Assembly (NCBI GenBank): GCA_025594325.1
Contig: JANHCV010000001.1
Coordinates: forward strand, 2,666,001-2,730,000
Source: Blastocladiella emersonii ATCC 22665
Taxonomy: Eukaryota > Fungi > Blastocladiomycota
DNA: 64,000 bases
Reading direction: 5' to 3'
Part shown: one piece after another, positions 38,227-49,028 of the stretch
Numbering within the stretch: position 1 is the first letter of the stretch
Layout of the letters: each line of letters starts with the position of its first letter
The notes under the pieces: generated by a model
What the model saw: the letters and a program-made list of their open reading frames with translations, nothing else
What the model was told of the DNA's origin: nothing
The model's database searches: none
Translations under genes and position numbers: made by a program

Positions 38227-41200
38227 ATGAACAACGAGGACAGCATCCTGTACCGCGCCAAGCGGGCGCGGCAGGCCGCGGCGTCGGGCCAGCAGCCCGT
38301 CCGCAAACCCGATCCGCCGCTGAGCCCCGTCGAGACCAAGCCCAAGGCGATCCTGGCGGCGCTCCCGCGGCTCGTGAATGCGCGCTTCGTCCAGCTCAAC
38401 CTGCTCTTCATCGCGCTTGTCTTCGCCGCGACCACGGCGCTCGGCGGCCTCCTCCACGCCGTCACCCTGCGCGTCGTCCCTGCGGCCGCGAAACACTGGA
38501 TCTGGGCGCTCTGGGCCGCTGACCTCGCGGTCCTTGCGCGCACGGCCTGGACGCTCGGGAACGGGCTGCGCGAGTGTGGCCGGATGGGCGCCGCGGCGCT
38601 CACGGCCGCCGAGGAGGACGCGCTCAACCTGCCCAAGGTGTCGTCCAAGAACGGCGCTCAGTGGCCATCCTCATCATCTTCGCCATCGCAGGAACCCGCG
38701 TCGCCGCGCGAGGAAGACCTGCCCGCGGACCCCGCGGCGCGCGCTGCGCACGAGGCGTACGTGTATGCGTATCCAAAATCGACGCGCAGCGAGTCCATGT
38801 TCGAGCGCGCCGTCAAGTCGCAGTGCGCGGCCGCCGTCGTGTACGGGATCGTCGCGTCCATGCTCATCTCGACGCTCGTGCGTCTGCCCATCATCTACCT
38901 GCTGGCCTCGCCCGCGTCGCTGCCCGTGCTCGTGCTCGGCGGCGACGGACGCGATAAGCTCACCAGCATGTTTGCCGAGCTCACCACGCCGCTCGCCGTC
39001 ACCGCGGTCCGCGCGATCCCGCTCGTCGCGATGGCTGGGTCGCGCATGGTGCTCGACTCGGCGACCAAGCCGCTGTTCAACCTCCATCTCGCGAGCATCC
39101 AGTACAGCTATTTCGTGGACATGGTCGACGCGGTCGCCATGTTCGAGTCCTTCCAGCGCGGGGCGCGGTACTCGGTGGCGGTGGCCGCGGGCGCGCTCGG
39201 GTTCGCCGGCAGCCAGTCGGACGACGGCGACGGGATCATCACGTCGACAACGCTGCTGGTGCTCGTCCTGGTCGTCGCCATTGCGCAGCTCGCGCTCGCG
39301 CAGTACCACCTCGCCACGGCCACGGCGCACCGGCACGGGTACTACGTGTTCCCGGACATGCTGTCGCAGCACATCACGGGCAGCTACATGCGCGAGCGCA
39401 TGGGCCGGCCGATCCTCATCGCGCTCAACACGGCGACGCTGGCGCTGCGCATCGTGCTGTGGACCAAGTTCAACGTGGTCTCGACCCTGCTCGCCGTCAA
39501 GAACGTGTTCGTCATCGGCCAGAACCTGTTCCGCCTGCGCAAGGTCGCGCAGCTGCGCGACGCGTACCGGCTCGGGTCCGCGAGCGAGCGCCGCGTGTGC
39601 GCCATGGCCGAGGAGCTGCTGGACCTCATGCGCTGCGATATTGCCGTCGAGCCGGCCGACTGGAAACGGCCGTACCAGTGCGACTGGATCGGCGTGTACC
39701 GCGGACCCGCCGCGTGTCCGCTCTCCGACGCGCACATCTACTTCCGCATCCACTTCCCGCCGCTCTACCCGGCGCAGCGACCGCAGCTCTTCCTCATCTC
39801 GGTGCCGCCGTTCCCCGTCCTCGGCGTCGCCGCCGACGGCGAGATGCTGTTCCGCAAGCCGTCGGAGCGTAGCGGTAAGTTCGCGTCCAAGCGCAAGCAG
39901 CCGGCGCGCCGCGGAGGGGTCCCGATGGTGGCGGCCAAGCCGACTACCGCGGTCCCGGTGCTCGCACCGGCCGCCGAGGTCGAGCTCAACTCGGACCAGC
40001 CGCTGTTCCCGCCACGAAACGTCCGCCCGCCGCGCTTCTCGTCGTCGCGGTACAGCGACGAACACGGCGGCAACACCAACCCCGCTGCACCACCGCCGCC
40101 GCGCCGGTCGGCCTTCCCGCCGTCGCGGGACCAGTTCGACGCGCGGCACAACCTGCTGCCGCTCGACGAGACCAGTGTCTCGCTCGCCGACCTCGTCCAG
40201 CAGCACAGGACCGCCGACGCCGCCAGCACCGACGCAACGACGCTGCCGCCCCCGCCGCCGCGCACGCAGTCACGGTTCCACCTGACCGTCGACCACGACC
40301 GGATTCCGGGCATCGCGCGGATGCCGTCCGTCTCGGCGCGCGTCATGGGCCCGCGCCGTCGCGTGCCGACTCGCCCCGACGCGGACGAGATCGAGCCCGC
40401 TGCTGGGATGCGCGACCAGTCGTTCGCCTCGCTCTCGAGCATCTCGTCCGACTCGTCCATGTCCTCGTCGTCCTCGGAAGACGAGAGCGACACGGACAGC
40501 GTCGTGACGCTCGAGGCCGGCCTCTCCGCGCCTGCGGCTGCTTCGCCCACCGTGATCCCCGACTACGACGACGGCCACCTCGACCCGGACACGACAATCG
40601 CGGACCCGCGCGACCTCGCCCCGCCGGTCGCCGCGGCGCTCGAGTCGCTCGCCGTGTCGCGGCTCCAGCGCGCCGCGGCGTTCATTGCGCCGCTGCAGCG
40701 GCAGTGGATCGCGGCGTCGATGCACGCGCGGCTGCGAATCCGCACGCGCCCGCGGTCCGTCGTCGGCCTGTACGAGGCGCTCGGCGACCGGCTCGAGGCC
40801 GCGATGCTCATGGCCGCGGTCGCCGAGGCCGAGGGACAGGGCAAGCTGGCCGACGACGGGTCGCTCGTCGATCACGCACACGACGACGACGTGTCGGTGC
40901 ACTCGGGCTCGACCGACTCGGCCGCGCACCACGCCGCGACCGTGGCGCGGCTGCAGTCCATGACGCACCGCATGGCCGGCCAGATGCGCCGGTGGATGGT
41001 GTTCCGCGGCCACCCGCGCGCGCAGCTCGCACCGACGTGCTACGCGTGGGCGACGACGGCGGCCGCACGGTACGCCGAGGAGCGCGACCAGTTCGACGCC
41101 GAGTGGGACGCGTACCTCGACCGCGTCGCGCGGTACCGCGAGGTCAAGGAGGCATTGCGCCGCGCCAAGGCTGAGAAGCGCGCGCGCAAGGCGGCGCGGG

Positions 41201-41241
41201 CCGAGCGGTGGGCTGCGCAGAAGCGGCGGATCCGTGGGTAG
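38227..41241 (+). CDS. Multi-pass membrane protein fused to a UBC-like (UEV) domain and a C-terminal helical/basic tail
   Basis: About 6-8 hydrophobic segments to ~39530. Then AEELLDL...DWIGVYRGPAACPLSDAHIYFRIHFPPLYPAQRPQLFL, an E2 fold signature lacking HPN and the catalytic Cys. Confidence 0.7.
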   Translation: MNNEDSILYRAKRARQAAASGQQPVRKPDPPLSPVETKPKAILAALPRLVNARFVQLNLLFIALVFAATTALGGLLHAVTLRVVPAAAKHWIWALWAADLAVLARTAWTLGNGLRECGRMGAAALTAAEEDALNLPKVSSKNGAQWPSSSSSPSQEPASPREEDLPADPAARAAHEAYVYAYPKSTRSESMFERAVKSQCAAAVVYGIVASMLISTLVRLPIIYLLASPASLPVLVLGGDGRDKLTSMFAELTTPLAVTAVRAIPLVAMAGSRMVLDSATKPLFNLHLASIQYSYFVDMVDAVAMFESFQRGARYSVAVAAGALGFAGSQSDDGDGIITSTTLLVLVLVVAIAQLALAQYHLATATAHRHGYYVFPDMLSQHITGSYMRERMGRPILIALNTATLALRIVLWTKFNVVSTLLAVKNVFVIGQNLFRLRKVAQLRDAYRLGSASERRVCAMAEELLDLMRCDIAVEPADWKRPYQCDWIGVYRGPAACPLSDAHIYFRIHFPPLYPAQRPQLFLISVPPFPVLGVAADGEMLFRKPSERSGKFASKRKQPARRGGVPMVAAKPTTAVPVLAPAAEVELNSDQPLFPPRNVRPPRFSSSRYSDEHGGNTNPAAPPPPRRSAFPPSRDQFDARHNLLPLDETSVSLADLVQQHRTADAASTDATTLPPPPPRTQSRFHLTVDHDRIPGIARMPSVSARVMGPRRRVPTRPDADEIEPAAGMRDQSFASLSSISSDSSMSSSSSEDESDTDSVVTLEAGLSAPAAASPTVIPDYDDGHLDPDTTIADPRDLAPPVAAALESLAVSRLQRAAAFIAPLQRQWIAASMHARLRIRTRPRSVVGLYEALGDRLEAAMLMAAVAEAEGQGKLADDGSLVDHAHDDDVSVHSGSTDSAAHHAATVARLQSMTHRMAGQMRRWMVFRGHPRAQLAPTCYAWATTAAARYAEERDQFDAEWDAYLDRVARYREVKEALRRAKAEKRARKAARAERWAAQKRRIRG

Positions 41242-41294: not shown

Positions 41295-42185
41295 CTAGAG
41301 CTTGGTGAAGCGCGCCTGCACGAAGATCCGGTCCATGCGAGCGCCCTCCTTGCGGTTCACGGTCTCCTTGACCACGTACTGATTGCTCGACACGGCGAAC
41401 CCGTGGCGCGTGAAGAGCGAGGCGAGGATCTCTGCAGCGGAGGTCAGCGTCAGCGGTGGTCGCGCGATCCGATGTCAAGGTTAATACGTACCCGTCGTGA
41501 AGTAATACGCCATCGTCCCGTCTTGCCGCACGTAGAGCCCGTCCTCGAGCCGGTGGCCCGGCTTGAAGCGCAGCTGCGCCTGGTCGTAGAGAGCGTAGTC
41601 GCGGAACAGCACGATGCCGCCGGGCTTCACGACGCGCGCAATGTTCGCGACGGCCGCGTCCATGTGCTCGGGCGCGATGGCGGACAGCACGAAGATGAAG
41701 GACAGAATGTCGACGCCGGCCGGCGGGATCGTCTTCGTCAGGTCATCGACGGTCAAGTCCGCGACGAACGCGCAGATCCGGCTCGCGTCGTACTCGGGGT
41801 GCGTCTGGACGAGCGCCACGGCGTTCTTGGAGAAATCGCACATGTACGCGAACATGTTGGGCCGCGACCGCAGCAGCGGCCACACAAAGTTGCCGACGGC
41901 GCAGCCGACCTCGCACACGACGACCTTGGCGTCGCCGAACTGCAGCTCCTCGAACTCGCGGTCCGTCCAGTGCCGGTCCTTGTAGAAGTTGCGCTCGTTG
42001 CGCTTGTAGAAGAGGTCCCAGCTCTTGGCGGCCTCGGCCTTGTACTTTTTCACCCAAAAGTCGGGCACGGGCTTCGTGTCTTTGGCGAGGATCTGCTCGG
42101 CGCGAGCGACGAAGGCCGGGTCGAGCGCGTCGAGCACCGCGGTCCCGATCTCGGGCAGGTCCGTCGACGAAGTTGGCGGGTCCAT
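41295..42185 (-). CDS. METTL6: tRNA N3-methylcytidine methyltransferase, METTL6/METTL2 family
   Basis: Motifs EAAKSWDLFYKRNERNFYKDRHWTDREFEEL, EVGCAVGN, CDFSKNAV, FVLSAI, GGIVLFRDYALYDQAQLRF and YVRQDGTMAYYF. One intron near 41433-41490. Confidence 0.92.
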
Positions 42186-42398
42186 TGCAGCAAGTGTGTG
42201 TTCCGTCTTCATTGCAGGTTTGCTGTTCTATGATGTGATGGGGAGGAGCGTTGGTTGCTGCACCTCGACTAAGTCACCCCTTCACTCAGAACAGCTCCTG
42301 AGAGCTGGCAGGACGACAATAACACCGGCTTCGCCGTTGCTAACCGGCAGCCAGGAGGGCGAGCGAGTTGATCGGCACAAAAGTGCTGCATCAAAGTG

Positions 42399-42476
42399 TC
42401 TCGCGATCAGGGCATGACTTCCACGTGATGCCTCACGCGTGGCGTGCGTCTCGCGCCTGATGCTACGCGTGATCAG
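42399..42476 (+). promoter_or_regulatory. Conserved upstream element of orphan gene A
   Basis: tctcgcga..tgacttccacgtgatg..tctcgcgcctgatgc..cgcgtgatcag aligns with 44237-44296. Confidence 0.6.
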
Positions 42477-42610
42477 CCGCGCATGCGGGAAAGTGCGAGC
42501 AAATTGGACCCCGGGACGCGCATATATCGAATGGCGATCGATAAGAGCGTGCCACAGCCAGGCTACAAAAGTCGTTCAACTTCTCGCGCGCGTTCGCAGC
42601 TCGGCACATC

Positions 42611-43170
42611 ATGTTCCTCCCCTACAGTACGTCGAGCTGATGCCCGCGTGTCTAGTCCGTCTATTTGACAGCGTGCTTACTGGCCATCGCTCCTCAGCTC
42701 ATACACCAAAGGAAATCCACGCGAATGCCCGCCCGCTGCGTACGGTGCGAACCGACCACGGCCTCCAGCGCGCGAACCTCGCGCCAGAAGCGTTCACGAT
42801 ACTCCAGTCCGGGCAACTTCGCCGAAACCACGAAATCCTCCGGAACATTATTTCGTACGCGCGAAACTCCTGGCGGTCCACACCACGCATGCTTGAACTC
42901 GTGCGCCAGTTGGAAAACAACCTGTTGGCGCCTGCGCGGCCCAAGGCTACTCATCCTTTGCACGGGTTGCTCGCTGCTCAAAAGAAAGCCCGACCCAAGC
43001 CCACACAGCGGGCACCAACGGCAGTGTTCCCGTCGCCATTATCAACATTGCCGCCCAACGCAGCCGTCAAGTCGCGGAGTGTTGACCCGGCGCAGCTCAC
43101 GGCGGCCCTTCATCAGGTCCAAATCTCTCAGATGTTGGCGAAGCTCAACTCTCAAGGAATAGGAAAGTAA
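42611..43170 (+). CDS. Orphan tandem family member A (~162 aa)
   Basis: 16-nt exon 1 (MFLPY), phase-1 intron 42627-42697, exon 2 in frame. About 42% identical to member C over 66 aa (hand alignment). Confidence 0.72.
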
Positions 43171-43381
43171 ACTTTTGTGCTCGAATATATCCTACTGTTT
43201 TTGTTGTCACAATGGCTTTGGCGGAAGGCTCAGAGCCAGCGCGGGGGAATGATTTACGTGAAAGAATGCTGGTCGTTTGAGACGAGCAGTTGCGTGAGCA
43301 TAGCTTTGCCTCGAATCTGCTCGGTGATGGACCAAATGCTTGGACAGGTCGAGCCTCTGAGCGCGCCAACATGGAGCAGGT

Positions 43382-43410
43382 GTTCGAGTCCGCGCTTGAC
43401 GCGTGATGCC
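43382..43410 (+). promoter_or_regulatory. Conserved upstream element of orphan gene B
   Basis: gttcgagtccgcgcttgac resembles gttcgagtcctgcgttgac upstream of gene C. It is followed by cgcgtgatg. Confidence 0.5.
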
Positions 43411-43572
43411 TGGTTTGATGCATGGGCGAGCGGACTTCACGTCCACATCGTGAGCTGATCTTGTTGTCAGATGACGCGCATACGTACAGTGCCGGTGTAC
43501 AAGGGCAAAGGAAGACCCCGCGCTCCCGCTCCTCTCTCCCGCGAATGAAACGAAGTCCACAAAAAGTCTCAA

Positions 43573-44136
43573 ATGTCCCCCAGTACGTCGGGCACGCGTG
43601 TCACCGCTACCTCGTCGTGTTGCTTTGGCGCTCTCTAAGTTCGTTCTCCAGCTCATTCATCGCAGGAATCCCTGAGCAAATCTCATTCATTGGAGGCACT
43701 GCATACTTCTTCTACCCCTGGTCCCGCAAATATCCAGTCCAACGCGTTCACAGTTGTCAGAACGGCGCAACTCCACAAGCTTGAGGAGATTGCCAAACAC
43801 GTAGTGCGTGAAGCTCGGTTTAACCCGCTGCCCGACCCATATATGCTCGACCTCGTGCGACTGTTGGAGCAGCACACGCTGACGCCGGTTCAGTGCGAAG
43901 TTTCGTTGCCCACGCATATTGCCCCGCTAACAACAACGCGTTCTGCGAACAGCAAGCGGTCATCCGTGCCGTCGCCGTCGGTCCCAGCTTCGCCAAGCTC
44001 TGGCTCATCTCCGGGTAGTAGCGCTGGTTCTCGCCGTGCAAGCACTTCCAAACAGCTTTTGGACCAGGAAAAGCAGATGCTGTTGGACCTTCAGTTGATA
44101 CTTAAGCGTTTGTCTCTTCAGGGAAGTAATAAATGA
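43573..44136 (+). CDS. Orphan tandem family member B (~164 aa)
   Basis: 10-nt exon 1, phase-1 intron 43583-43651. 20/51 identical to member C, ungapped (hand alignment). Confidence 0.72.
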
Positions 44137-44236
44137 TGAGACTTCCGAGTGTTGAAAACCTGTCTTGCCCATCGGAAGTATCCTGAATGCGCGTGAGTTT
44201 GAGCGTTCGAGTCCTGCGTTGACTGGTCCTGAAACG

Positions 44237-44296
44237 TCTCGCGAGAAAGTCGTGACTTTCGCGTGATGTCTCGCGCGTGATGCGTCGAGTGATCAG
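44237..44296 (+). promoter_or_regulatory. Conserved upstream element of orphan gene C
   Basis: tctcgcga..tgactttcgcgtgatgtctcgcgcgtgatgc..agtgatcag, a counterpart of 42399-42476. Confidence 0.6.
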
Positions 44297-44444
44297 TCAC
44301 GGAGGTGGCTCGCTGCGGCCATATGAGCCCAACCCGCATTGCACCGAGCGCCTGACAGCATACATGACTTGCGACAGGAGCCGCGCAACGTTGAAGAGCG
44401 TAACACGGGCTTTCCTCCTTTGGCGCTCTCGAACACACAGCACA

Positions 44445-45160
44445 ATGACGACTTGTACGTCGAGTCGCCGCACCGCGTGCTCCACACTCCGCTAACTTCT
44501 TGCGCGTTGCCATTCCTTCCTTTCACAGCCCTTCGTTCACAAGGAGTACATGGCCATGCTCGGCCGCTGCGAGCGTTCCACGCTGACGTTCGCCCCCAAC
44601 TTGCTGGTCTCGCACCAAGCGACTTCACGCTCGTCAGGACGGGACAGCTTCGCCGACTCAAGGACGTCCTCAACAACGTTATGTACTGTGCTCAGTCTGC
44701 GCCGTATATCGACCCGCGGATGCTCGACGCACTGAAGCAGCTGGAGCAAACCATGCAGACGCCCTTGGAGGTCGCACCAACCTCTCAACGCGTCCCACCA
44801 GCGCCGCGCGTGCCCGTCCCGCAAGGGACGGGTACCACTCGGGCCGGAACTGTGGCTGCCCCTTCCTCTCCATCGGCTCAAGTGTTGGGAAGCACCGCCG
44901 CCCCCGTACCTGTCCCAGCTCCAGTTCAAGGGCAGCACCCGGGCAGTGCGCGACCTGCATACGTAACAAGAGTTCAACCGCAGTACCCAGGCAGTGCGCG
45001 ACCTGGACACGCAACAGGAGCAGCGACGACAAGTGTTCGCACTCAACCCGCCACCGACTTGATAAGCCTGTCTCAACAATTACTTGAGATGAACCGTGTC
45101 ACTCAAGTTCATACGGAACGGTTACGCCGTCAGCGCTCCACCTCTTCCTCGCGCTCGTAG
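44445..45160 (+). CDS. Orphan tandem family member C (~213 aa)
   Basis: 10-nt exon 1, phase-1 intron 44455-44528 (GTACGT, GCTAAC, CAG). Shares the helical domain with A and B. Confidence 0.72.
44923..45005 (+). repeat. 48-nt-period internal duplication in orphan gene C (VQxQxPGSARP)
   Basis: agttcaagggcagcacccgggcagtgcgcgacctg at 44923 and agttcaaccgcagtacccaggcagtgcgcgacctg at 44971. Confidence 0.8.
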
Positions 45161-45245: not shown

Positions 45246-45901
45246 CTACAAGGTTCGGTAGAGCGTGAACTCGAACTCAGTCCCCGTCGCCTTGTCAGTC
45301 TGCACGCCCGCGGGGACATCGATGCCCGCGACCCGCTCGACCTCGGTGTGGTCCGCGACGCGCTTGAAGCGCGCATCGGCCTCGAGATCTGGAAAGTGGG
45401 TGTCGCACGCCAGATCGTCGCGATGGACGCGCGTGAGGAAGACGTTGGCACACTGCGGGTGGGCGAGCGACTCGCGATAGACCTGGCCGCCGCCGATGAT
45501 GAAGACGTGGGCCACGTCGCTGCGCGCGGACAGCGTCGTGAGTGCCGCGTCAAGAGAAGCTGCGACAAGGACACCCTCCGGCGCATTAGCCCTACCACAT
45601 GCTTCCAGAGTAAGCGGGCAATTCATAGCCGATTCCGACCGCAAACGCACATGCTGCGCGACAGAATGACGTTGATGCGCCCAGGAAGCGGGCGGAACTT
45701 GGTCGGGATCGAGTCCCACGTCTTGCGGCCCATGATAACGGCGTTTACAGATCCCTCGTGAGCACCCTGGCGCAAGCCGTCGGTGGTCAAGCGGCGGAAG
45801 AAGGCCATGTCCTTGGGCAGGCGCCACGGCAGGTCGCCGTTCACGCCGATGCCGCCGTCGCGGGTAGCCGCCACCACAAGCGAAAAACGAGGCAGTTGCA
45901 T
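45246..45901 (-). CDS. DFR1: Dihydrofolate reductase
   Basis: Motifs [59 protein letters not shown] and CDTHFP. Intron 45592-45650. Confidence 0.97.
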
Positions 45902-46589
45902 GGAGTCAGATTGTTGATTCGTGGGGGGTCGCTCAAGGGTTCCGAGAGCGCGCGGTTCCGAGCGGCGGCGATCGGCGCGACCTCGGCTCATGCAATGTGA
46001 GGGCCCTGTCACCTCTATCGGTGTGGCGCAGCGCGTCCTCGGGACACCGAGTCGCCTCCCGGCGAGAGCTCAGCCCCAGAGCATCCAATAGCGAAGTTGA
46101 ACCATCAGCTGAACTCATGGCAGCTGGATCCTGAGGCTCCCCCGGCTCACGAGCCCTGCCCCGCGAACCTCGCCGGCAACGGCGAGCGCAAGGCGGGCTG
46201 TCCACTATGTGGCTGAGCCTGTACAGACGAGATGGCGAGCGATCGGTGGACTGAGCAAACGATCGAGAAGCGACGCGAACAAGAGCGATCTGCGTTCGCC
46301 CAGTAGCAAGGTCACGGGATCCCACATGACCGCGACGCAACTCGCGCGCCTTCTGCATTTTTCGCCGCCCTTCGAGGGGCCGTGGCCCTGCCAGCGGATC
46401 GGGTCATGTGACCGCGCCGTTCCGCAGGTTTCCAACGTTTTCGGGCGCGGCAGGGAGCGTGCGCCCATACAAGGGCGGGGTGGCCCGGGCCGCCGCTGGC
46501 CGAGCCGCCTGCCCGCACGCCTCCCTCCCCTCCTCCTCTTCCCTCGAAGAACTAGTCGGTTCCTGTTGCCCACGCCGATACACCCCACC

Positions 46590-49028
46590 ATGTCCGTCGT
46601 TGGTATTGATTTCGGTAACCTGCAGACGTGCATTGCCGTCGCCCGCAACCGCGGCATCGACATCATCTGCAATGAGGTGTCGAACCGCTTCACCCCGTAC
46701 GCTCTCGCCGCCGCCGTCCGAGCGCCGATCCGGTCCGCCCGCTGACCTTGCTCCACGCACGTCACGTCTAGCTCGCTCGTCGGCTTCGGCCCCAAGTCGC
46801 GCCACCTCGGCGAGGGCGCCGCGACGCTGCACGTGTCGAACCTGAAGAACACGGTCAGCTCGCTCAAGCGCCTGGTCGGCCGCCCCGCGACGGACGCGAC
46901 GCTCGCCAAGGAGCGCGAGTACACGACGGCCAACATGGTCGCGTCGGACCCGTCCGTGTCGCCGTCGGGCGAGATCGGCGTGCAGGTGCAGTACCTCGGC
47001 GAGGAGCGCACCTTCTCGGCGACCCAGTGCGCCGCCATGTACCTCGGCAAGATCAAGCAGATCACCGAGCACGAGCTCAAGGCGCCCGTCTCGGACGTGG
47101 TCGTGTCGGTCCCCGTGTGGTTCTCGCCCGCCCAGCGCCAGGCCATGATCGAGTCGTGCGAGATTGCCGGCCTCAACCCGCTGCGCATCATCAACGACAC
47201 CACCGCCGCGGCCCTCGCCTACGGCATCACCAAGACGGACCTGCCCGAGGAGACCCCGCGCAAGGTCGTCTTCGTCGACGTCGGCCACTCGTCGACCTCG
47301 ATCGCCGCCGTCGCCTTCGTCAAGGGCAAGCTGCAGGTCAAGGCCACCACCGCCGACCCCTTCCTCGGCGGCCGCGACCTCGACCAGCTCCTCGTCAACC
47401 ACTTTGTGGCCGAGTTCAAGGAGAAGTACAAGTTCGACCTCGCCCAGCACCCCAAGCCCCTCTTCCGCCTGCGCGCCGCCATCGACAAGCTCAAGAAGGT
47501 GCTGTCGTCCAACTCGCAGGCCCCGCTCAACATCGAGGCGCTGTTCGAGGACCGCGACGTGTCGTCCATGATCACCCGCGACGAGTTCGAGAAGTACGCC
47601 GAGCCCTTCACCTCGCGCATCGCGCCCATGATCCGCAACGTGCTCGACCAGGCCGGCTGGACCAAGGAGGAGGTGTTCTGCGTCGAGACGGTGGGCGGAA
47701 CCACCCGCGTCCCCGCGATCCGCGAGGCCATCACCAAGTACTTTGAGCGCGACCTGCTCTCGTTCACCATCAACCAGGACGAGGCCGTGGCCCGCGGGTG
47801 CGCCCTCATGTGCGCCATCATCTCGCCCGCGTTCCGCGTGCGCGAGTTTGAGATCAAGGACGTGTCGGCGTACAACGCGACCGTGTCGTGGATGCAGCAC
47901 GCCGAGTCGGGCGCCGGCGACGAGGCCAAGCAGCTCACCGTGTTCGAGAAGGGCGCCGTGGTGCCCGCGACCAAGGTGCTGACCTTCTACCGCAAGCCCG
48001 AGCAGCCGTTCGAGTTCGAGGCCAACCTCGACGCCAAGGCGACGCCGCCCGCGACGCAGGGCGCCACCTTCCTCGGCCGCCACACCATCACCAAGGTGCC
48101 CGTCGGGTCGACCGAGAACCCCGAGGAGCTCACCACGCTCAAGGTGCGCGTGCGCATGAACCCCAACCACATGGTGTCGGTCGAGTCGGCCCACGCCCTG
48201 GTCGAGGACAACACCCCCGAGGAGCCCGCGGCCGAGGGCGACGCGCCCGCCGCGTCCGAGGAGCCGCCCAAGAAGAAGCACAAGAAGGTCGAGGTGACCG
48301 TGGTGTCGTCGGAGCCCGGCCTCGCCAAGTCGGTGGTGCAGGACCTCAAGGAGGTGGAGAACTCGATGGCGTCGTCGGACCGCCTGGTGTTCGACACGGA
48401 GGTGGCCAAGAACGCGCTCGAGGAGTACATCTACGACGCGCGCGACAAGAAGGACTACCAGTGGGCCGAGTTCCTGTCCGAGTCGGACAAGGAGACGCTG
48501 GGCAACCTGCTCAACGCGGCCGAGGACTGGCTGTACTCTGACGAGGGCGAGGACGCGGCCAAGTCCGTGTACCAGGCCAAGCTCGGCGAGCTCAAGGCGA
48601 TCGGGCAGCCGGCGCACGAGCGGTACCGCGAGGCCGAGGAGCGCCCGCGCGCGCAGCAGGCCTTCTTCGACCTGGTCAACAAGTTTCTGGCCATGGCGGA
48701 GAACCCCGAGTTCGCGTGGCTCCCGGCTGCGGACCTCCAGCAGGTCAAGGACAAGCTGACGGCCAAGAAGGAGTGGGCCATGAACCTGGTCAAGAAGCAG
48801 GCGCAGCAGCCCAAGCACGCCGAGCTCCTCATCACGGCGGCGCAGCTGCAGCGCGAGAAGGACGAGGCCGAGCGCATCGCCGTGGTCGTGTTCAACCGCC
48901 CCAAGCCCGCGCCCAAGGTCGAGGAGCCCGCGGCCCCCGCCGAGGGCGAGGCTGCCGCCGCCGCCCCCGAGGCCGAGAAGAAGGCCGAGGAGCCCGCCAA
49001 GGAGGAGGACGCCATGAACGTCGACTAA
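46590..49028 (+). CDS. SSE1: Hsp110 (Sse1/HSPA4) nucleotide-exchange chaperone
   Basis: Motifs MSVVGIDFG...[55 protein letters not shown] and KNALEEYIYDAR. Intron 46697-46771. Confidence 0.96.

Follow-up and report, generated by a model that had tools for sequence, protein, structure and literature searches.

Fungal orphan tandem families are small, disordered and fast diverging; they use codons atypically, have no homologue outside the lineage, and are missed by ab initio gene prediction. Gene families found in one lineage only are common. Here we describe a putative family of this kind in Blastocladiella emersonii ATCC 22665, a water mould-like model zoosporic fungus: three genes, called A, B, and C below, which lie on one strand (+) between METTL6 and DHFR at positions 42,611 to 45,160 of a 64,000-nucleotide (nt) window (GenBank assembly GCA_025594325.1, contig JANHCV010000001.1, positions 2,666,001 to 2,730,000; the window is the whole stretch of DNA analyzed, and all coordinates are counted from its first letter). 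An earlier reading of this stretch (the original prediction) had proposed the three as a tandem trio of orphan paralogues sharing a helical domain. The trio resembles the fungal orphan tandem families in all of the features just named. It differs from them in keeping what is predicted to be a folded, selected helical hairpin together with a start-proximal intron, in having one promoter element with higher conservation than the coding sequence, and in consisting of copies that appear old rather than recent.

The similarity among the three genes is specific to the predicted reading frame. In-frame BLOSUM62 scores of the aligned DNA are 108 to 140, versus 2 to 57 in the two other frames of the same alignments, and the pairs that include B follow this pattern (108 to 113 in frame, 2 to 36 off frame). 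Pooled identity is highest at codon position 2 (148/246), followed by position 1 (122/246) and position 3 (111/246), and positions 2 and 3 differ significantly (Fisher p 0.001). By the Nei-Gojobori method, the proportion of nonsynonymous differences (pN, 0.41 to 0.46) is below that of synonymous differences (pS, 0.61 to 0.66) in every pair (z 2.7 to 2.9; one-sided p 0.002 to 0.004 per pair). The core has a ratio of nonsynonymous to synonymous substitution rates (dN/dS) of ~0.45 with dS of 1.2 to 1.6, and because dS is saturated the pN/pS test is conservative. Open frames of these lengths rarely survive shuffling (P 0.009 for A, 0.0017 for B, and 0.0024 for C; joint ~4e-8), and all five other frames of each gene carry 1 to 10 stops. 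On four independent signals, A, B, and C thus look like real protein-coding genes whose core is under purifying selection. The original prediction had spoken of selected duplicates, and the dN/dS near 1 that it had named as part of a counterexample did not occur.

Each gene model joins a very short coding part of exon 1 to a second exon across a phase 1 intron. Gene A (42611 to 43170, plus strand) has its coding exon 1 at 42611-42626, an intron of 71 nt at 42627-42697, and exon 2 at 42698-43170, giving a coding sequence of 489 nt and a protein of 162 residues between the ATG at 42611 and the stop at 43170. Gene B (43573 to 44136, plus strand) is composed of coding exon 1 at 43573-43582, an intron of 69 nt at 43583-43651, and exon 2 at 43652-44136 (495 nt, 164 residues; ATG at 43573, stop at 44136). 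Gene C (44445 to 45160, plus strand) is the longest, with coding exon 1 at 44445-44454, an intron of 74 nt at 44455-44528, and exon 2 at 44529-45160 (642 nt, 213 residues; ATG at 44445, stop at 45160); its greater length is due in part to a tandem repeat of 2 × 48 nt (44923 to 45018, plus strand; 16 residues each, 83% identical) in a linker that is predicted to be disordered. The coordinates, the phase 1 introns, and the spliced lengths of 489, 495, and 642 nt reproduce exactly those first proposed. The term "micro-exon" that accompanied them holds for the 10 to 16 nt of coding sequence between each start codon and the predicted intron; it need not hold as an exon size, to which a 5′ untranslated region may add.

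The predicted introns (69 to 74 nt, all phase 1) have the form GTACGTCG[AG]G...CAG, beginning GTACGT, and ATG, donor, phase, and acceptor are kept in 3/3 genes. They can be called host-style because METTL6 and Hsp110 have proven introns of similar form (GTACGT/GTACGC...AG, 60 to 75 nt). Unspliced read-through from the ATG ends after 9 codons in A, 21 in B, and 16 in C. Gene A has an extra in-frame ATG at 42641, inside the putative intron, from which the exon 2 frame is reachable without splicing; neither B nor C offers another in-frame ATG before its core unless spliced. From the sequence, an ATG-initiated full-length frame would strictly need splicing in B and C only.

Paralogy of the three proteins is clear from BLASTP, in which A and C share 30/75 residues (40%; E 7e-18), B and C 30/89 (34%; E 2e-10), and A and B 27/88 (31%; E 1e-11). 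Residues 1 to 82 of exon 2 align among A, B, and C without a gap and contain 13 invariant positions, with a core pattern of F-T-[ILV]-[LV]-x-x-x-Q-L ... A ... P-x-M-L-[DE] ... L-E. These matches (E 2e-10 to 7e-18) confirm the shared ungapped core that had been aligned by hand. No fourth copy was found in the 64-kb window, and no relatives of the trio occur among the annotated proteins of the B. emersonii genome. The ATGs are 962 nt (A to B) and 872 nt (B to C) apart and the acceptors 954 and 877 nt apart; this spacing fits a ~0.9-kb unit that was duplicated in tandem twice, and the unit would have comprised promoter element, start codon, start-proximal phase 1 intron, and open reading frame (ORF). 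The saturated dS (1.2 to 1.6), the protein identities of 31 to 40%, and the retained position and phase of the intron support the view, already part of the original prediction, that the trio are old paralogues. Since the search for orthologues came back empty, the age of the family is datable by paralogue divergence only. Separately, a 16-mer (CTTTGGCGCTCTCTAA / ...CGAA, 15/16 identical) occurs both at 43623-43638, in the intron of gene B, and at 44418-44433, shortly before the start codon of gene C; it may be the trace of a duplication breakpoint, or a matter of chance.

The three genes also share sequence upstream of their starts. Two 8-mers, CGCGTGAT and CGTGATGC, occur in 3/3 upstream regions (300 nt each), where shuffling yields a mean of 0.007 shared 8-mers, and the motif sites of the trio lie 142 to 189 nt before the ATGs. 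The promoter block of A (42398 to 42488, plus strand) contains CACGTGATG at 42422, CGCGTGATC at 42466, and GTGATCAG at 42469, along with ACGCGT at 42435 and 42465; that of B is a single motif, ACGCGTGATGC (43399 to 43419, plus strand), 173 nt upstream of the ATG; and that of C (44236 to 44308, plus strand) contains CGCGTGATG at 44260 and 44274 and GTGATCAG at 44289, 156 to 185 nt upstream of the ATG. CRCGTGATG occurs five times in the 64-kb window, and four of these occurrences fall within the three promoters. Between A and C, the promoter blocks are 80% identical over 42398-42441 (44 nt) and 78% identical over 42448-42488 (41 nt), and the nucleotide identity of the coding core, at 54%, is below both values; with promoter identity exceeding core identity, the element is either more constrained than the protein or homogenized. 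A motif common to all three promoters points to common regulation of A, B, and C, as had been proposed for them as co-regulated duplicates.

The nearest described regulatory system is that of the MluI cell-cycle box (MCB), ACGCGT, which is bound by MBF/SBF-type KilA-N factors, and DHFR is a classical G1/S gene. The trio resembles MCB promoters in that CGCG(T) forms the core of CGCGTGAT, a perfect ACGCGT is present in A and B, and DHFR is a neighbor. It departs from them in that its element extends into GTGATG/GTGATCAG, which lies outside the MCB, and in that the promoter of C has no perfect ACGCGT. At the METTL6 locus of Allomyces macrogynus, a 190-residue KilA-N domain protein is annotated nearby, at 497-1103 of the locus sequence; this shows that the factor class (MBF/SBF-type DNA-binding domain) exists in the phylum, with no link to the trio demonstrated. 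A single 398-nt spacer (42213-42610) with CGCGTGAT-type elements lies between METTL6 (minus strand) and gene A (plus strand), which point away from each other, and an element of this type could for that reason act on METTL6 too.

Homologues of the trio were sought widely among known proteins and contigs. Whole proteins and cores gave no match in Pfam by hmmscan at E ≤ 10, and none in PHROGs. A word-based search of 5.8 billion proteins with C as the query found no homologue, and an exhaustive profile search of 1.84 billion representative proteins, a library that takes in the proteins annotated for B. emersonii, B. britannica, Allomyces, Sorochytrium, and Paraphysoderma, returned one match only, a repetitive protein scored over four stretches, which we rejected as spurious. 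Metagenome, viral, and prokaryotic contigs contained no homologue. In four relatives (B. britannica, A. macrogynus, A. javanicus, and Sorochytrium), the locus around METTL6 has that gene alone in common with the window, with no synteny and no match in a six-frame hidden Markov model search. Foldseek against PDB, AlphaFold DB clusters, and ESM Atlas returned generic helical hairpins only, and the 3-sequence profile gave nothing significant in PDB (top match, CENP-H 213-244, E 0.14). Look-alikes offered by fold and language-model comparison (SpoIIIAH, a heavy-metal sensor, RasGAP, and a VWA C-terminal region) were set aside as generic or inconsistent among the paralogues. Rfam, tRNA, terminal-repeat, and transposon-domain searches of the low-GC island that holds the trio were all negative. 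The original prediction had recognized no known domain, and the Pfam, PDB, Foldseek, and PHROGs searches agree with it; a clear hit to a known family or transposon, which it had named as one outcome that would count against it, was not found in Pfam, PHROGs, viral contigs, or repeats. With searches of annotated proteins negative and protein-level selection seen, the trio classes as a candidate lineage-restricted (orphan) family, and it appears restricted to the Blastocladiella lineage.

Each protein is predicted to be basic, soluble, 18 to 23 kDa in size, and mostly disordered, with an antiparallel two-helix hairpin as its sole conserved fold. The isoelectric points are extremely basic (11.7 for A, 9.7 for B, and 11.5 for C), P, S, T, A, G, or Q make up 45 to 56% of residues, and none of the three proteins has a hydrophobic or membrane segment or a secretion signal. 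In an AlphaFold2 run on the 3-sequence alignment (residues in gene A exon 2 numbering), a disordered stretch (1 to 28) is followed by a helix (29 to 56), a short loop, and a second helix (62 to 76), the hairpin having a predicted local distance difference test (pLDDT) score of 73 to 88. In A the hairpin is encoded at 42784 to 42927 (plus strand) and consists of a helix of 28 residues, a 5-residue loop ending in an invariant Pro, and a helix of 15 residues; F32, T33, Q39, L40, A54, P62, M64, L65, L71, and E72 are invariant within it. The corresponding hairpins of B (43738 to 43881, plus strand) and C (44615 to 44758, plus strand; BLASTP to A, E 7e-18) align with that of A without gaps. After the hairpin the model has a disordered, P/S/T-rich linker and then a C-terminal helix (130 to 151, pLDDT 61 to 72). 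The C-terminal helix of the original prediction is therefore borne out in part: it is predicted by AlphaFold, but the C-terminal tails of the three proteins have no significant sequence similarity (shuffle p 0.08 to 0.22).

The public annotation of GCA_025594325.1 has zero genes in the ~3 kb separating DHFR from METTL6. It was made with funannotate using ab initio predictors, and RNA-seq was not used; the ~23,000 expressed sequence tags of B. emersonii served only as a check of assembly completeness (PMC9730499). We found no RNA-seq study of B. emersonii in the literature, and a search for sequencing runs listed four, all of DNA from one sample and none of RNA. The G+C content at third codon positions (GC3) is 0.67 in A and 0.57 in both B and C, compared with 0.82 to 0.99 in METTL6, DHFR, Hsp110, and a 1,004-residue neighbor, and 0.71 to 0.99 in the coding-like ORFs of at least 150 codons in the window. 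The GC3 of the trio is near the local intergenic GC (0.54 to 0.58), and the stretch from 42 to 45 kb has the lowest GC in the window. The gap in the ab initio annotation probably results from this low GC3 relative to the neighbors. Because the duplicates are old, low GC3 would be a stable trait rather than a mark of recency, and its likeness to intergenic DNA suggests expression that is weak or narrowly timed.

Taken as a whole, the best explanation, and one that we consider probable, is that A, B, and C are real, unannotated genes that were duplicated in tandem, encode basic hairpin proteins, are switched on together, and work by way of an interaction module. The hairpin, perhaps with the C-terminal helix, would form a helical-bundle interaction module that pairs the paralogues with one another or with a common partner, and the basic disordered arms would touch an acidic partner, for which nucleic acid or chromatin is the most plausible candidate. 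Splicing would gate the full-length protein in B and C, and in A the protein made from the annotated ATG. The CGCGTGAT(G/C) element would switch the three genes together, and their expression would be weak or narrowly timed, probably limited to a stage. The zoospore, meiosis, self/non-self, and conflict roles suggested in the original prediction remain speculative. A far more specific version, in which the trio are Blastocladiella-specific, splicing-gated, co-regulated basic helical proteins that act on nucleic acid or chromatin at a brief life-cycle stage and were born de novo in the low-GC island before expanding in tandem, strikes us as improbable in its full detail; in such a stage the proteins could, for example, package the zoospore nucleus or the ribosome-filled nuclear cap, or take part in a step of nuclear division.

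Several points weigh against this explanation. The gene models and splice junctions are predictions known from genomic sequence alone, and selection is deduced from just three paralogues with saturated synonymous sites. The basis for the interaction and nucleic-acid role is composition and architecture. The AlphaFold models, built on a 3-sequence alignment, reach a moderate mean pLDDT of 67 for the core and 57 for the full length. The MCB-like CGCG(T) core of CGCGTGAT allows no factor to be assigned, and ACGCGT, with 42 sites in 64 kb of GC-rich DNA, is frequent. Finally, a GC3 near intergenic GC is also expected of non-coding DNA.

That last point leads to two alternatives, one of which disputes that the genes function and the other only where they came from. 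If A, B, and C were ORFs open by chance or in decay, within an intergenic stretch that had been duplicated, the empty public annotation between DHFR and METTL6, the intergenic-like GC3, and models drawn from genomic sequence would all follow readily, the more so as GC-rich DNA gives many spurious long ORFs. Such an account has to contend, however, with three open frames whose joint shuffle probability is ~4e-8, with similarity that is frame-specific and most conserved at codon position 2, with a pN significantly below pS in all pairs, and with an ATG, donor, phase, and acceptor conserved in 3/3 genes, and ab initio annotation is blind to atypical codon usage; we hold it to be very improbable. 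More of a contender, possible though on balance doubtful, is that the genes are young: an ORF would have arisen from non-coding DNA in the low-GC island, been duplicated twice, and remained weakly integrated. This is a rival on origin and not on whether the genes are real. It would account for a GC3 of 0.57 to 0.67 near intergenic values (0.54 to 0.58, with neighbors at 0.82 to 0.99), for the island being the lowest-GC part of the window, and for short, mostly disordered proteins with no homologue in our searches. Yet the paralogues are old (saturated dS, 31 to 40% identity) and have kept frame, intron, and promoter all the same; their codon usage could long since have adjusted, so that low GC3 reads as stable and not as youth, and a well-packed amphipathic hairpin with 13 invariant residues also speaks against recent birth.

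Two further alternatives would give the trio known relatives or a selfish nature. A tie to replication or the kinetochore would suit the MCB-like ACGCGT sites and the DHFR neighbor, and it would follow if the proteins were diverged relatives of the GINS Psf2 alpha1-alpha2 hairpin or of the CENP-H C-terminal hairpin. B alone matches human PSF2 67-103 (E 0.002, 14/37 identical), CENP-H 213-244 is the top PDB match of the 3-sequence profile (E 0.14), and both matches span the loop and helix 2. The Psf2 A-domain (PF05916) is likewise a helix-loop-helix with a Pro-capped second helix, and in CENP-H (PF05837) a short D-P-x-L ... L-Q-L-E-x-N helix resembles helix 2 of the trio. But A and C have no PSF2 match even at E 10, nor does the 3-sequence profile, and of the residues common to B and PSF2 (F-x-P-x-P-x-P-Y, H), most prove on inspection not to be conserved in A and C. 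Neither Sld5/GINS (PF05916) nor CENP-H (PF05837) is matched in Pfam at E 10, and Foldseek returns neither family. The architectures differ as well: in the AlphaFold2 models the trio has two core helices only and no strands, lacking the GINS B-domain and the remaining A-domain helices, and its hairpin is N-terminal with no long coiled coil preceding it, whereas that of CENP-H is C-terminal after a coiled coil. Two unrelated families matching one short amphipathic helix points to chance, and the PSF2 and CENP-H leads (the one in B only, the other at E 0.14, with no Pfam match and differing architecture) were judged to be so; a true relationship to either is highly unlikely. No more credit is due to a selfish or conflict element, such as a toxin-antidote or spore-killer-like cluster or the cargo of a mobile element. 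A cluster that is tandem, fast-evolving, lineage-restricted, and compositionally atypical invites the comparison, but terminal inverted repeats and long direct repeats are both absent from the island borders, no transposase, integrase, or viral match came from Pfam, PHROGs, or viral contigs, the introns are host-style, the proteins carry no membrane or secretion signal, and the three copies are the only ones in the window, with none among the annotated proteins of the genome. A transposable-element or viral ORF was rejected on similar grounds (no flanking repeats; no transposase, integrase, or capsid domain; three copies only in the window).

The surroundings of the trio are as first described, with METTL6 and DHFR as flanks. 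METTL6 is an ORF at 41481-42212 on the minus strand, 100% identical to the METTL6-like protein H9P43_001005 of B. emersonii ATCC 22665, which is encoded on a 5.14-Mb contig, and this identity together with the DHFR match bears out both flanks; beyond the trio follow DHFR and then an Hsp110-type HSP70. Genomic contigs from the four DNA runs agree with the DNA sequence of the locus and give no splice junctions. The public DHFR model (45246-46012, minus strand; 118 residues) looks truncated: the ORF at 45623-46012 is a canonical DHFR N-terminus, and the deposited DHFR is without it and begins at an internal Met (MGRKTWDS...). In the Hsp110 gene (46531-47900), the genomic contigs of three DNA runs have approximately double depth, and a second contig set differs by ~5% from the reference, with 25/25 listed differences being C>T or G>A; either a second allele or a collapsed paralogue could lie behind this, as could a deamination-like process. 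On the other side of METTL6, the 1,004-residue neighbor (38227-41241) has no Pfam match at the default threshold (E ≤ 0.001).

For B. emersonii, real tandem-duplicated hairpin genes at this locus would enlarge the annotated gene set of a model zoosporic fungus by three and would expose a systematic blind spot, in that ab initio predictors trained at a GC3 near 0.9 pass over genes whose codon usage is intergenic-like; the true number of genes may for that reason exceed the published 10,031. Nothing about the trio points to biology of an unusual sort. For reporter work in Blastocladiella, the CGCGTGAT(G/C) element is a ready candidate cis-element, and because the protein family is without known relatives, any function found for it would be new. 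With old copies, a selected fold, a conserved promoter element, and unadapted codon usage, the trio would make a test case for the persistence of orphan genes.

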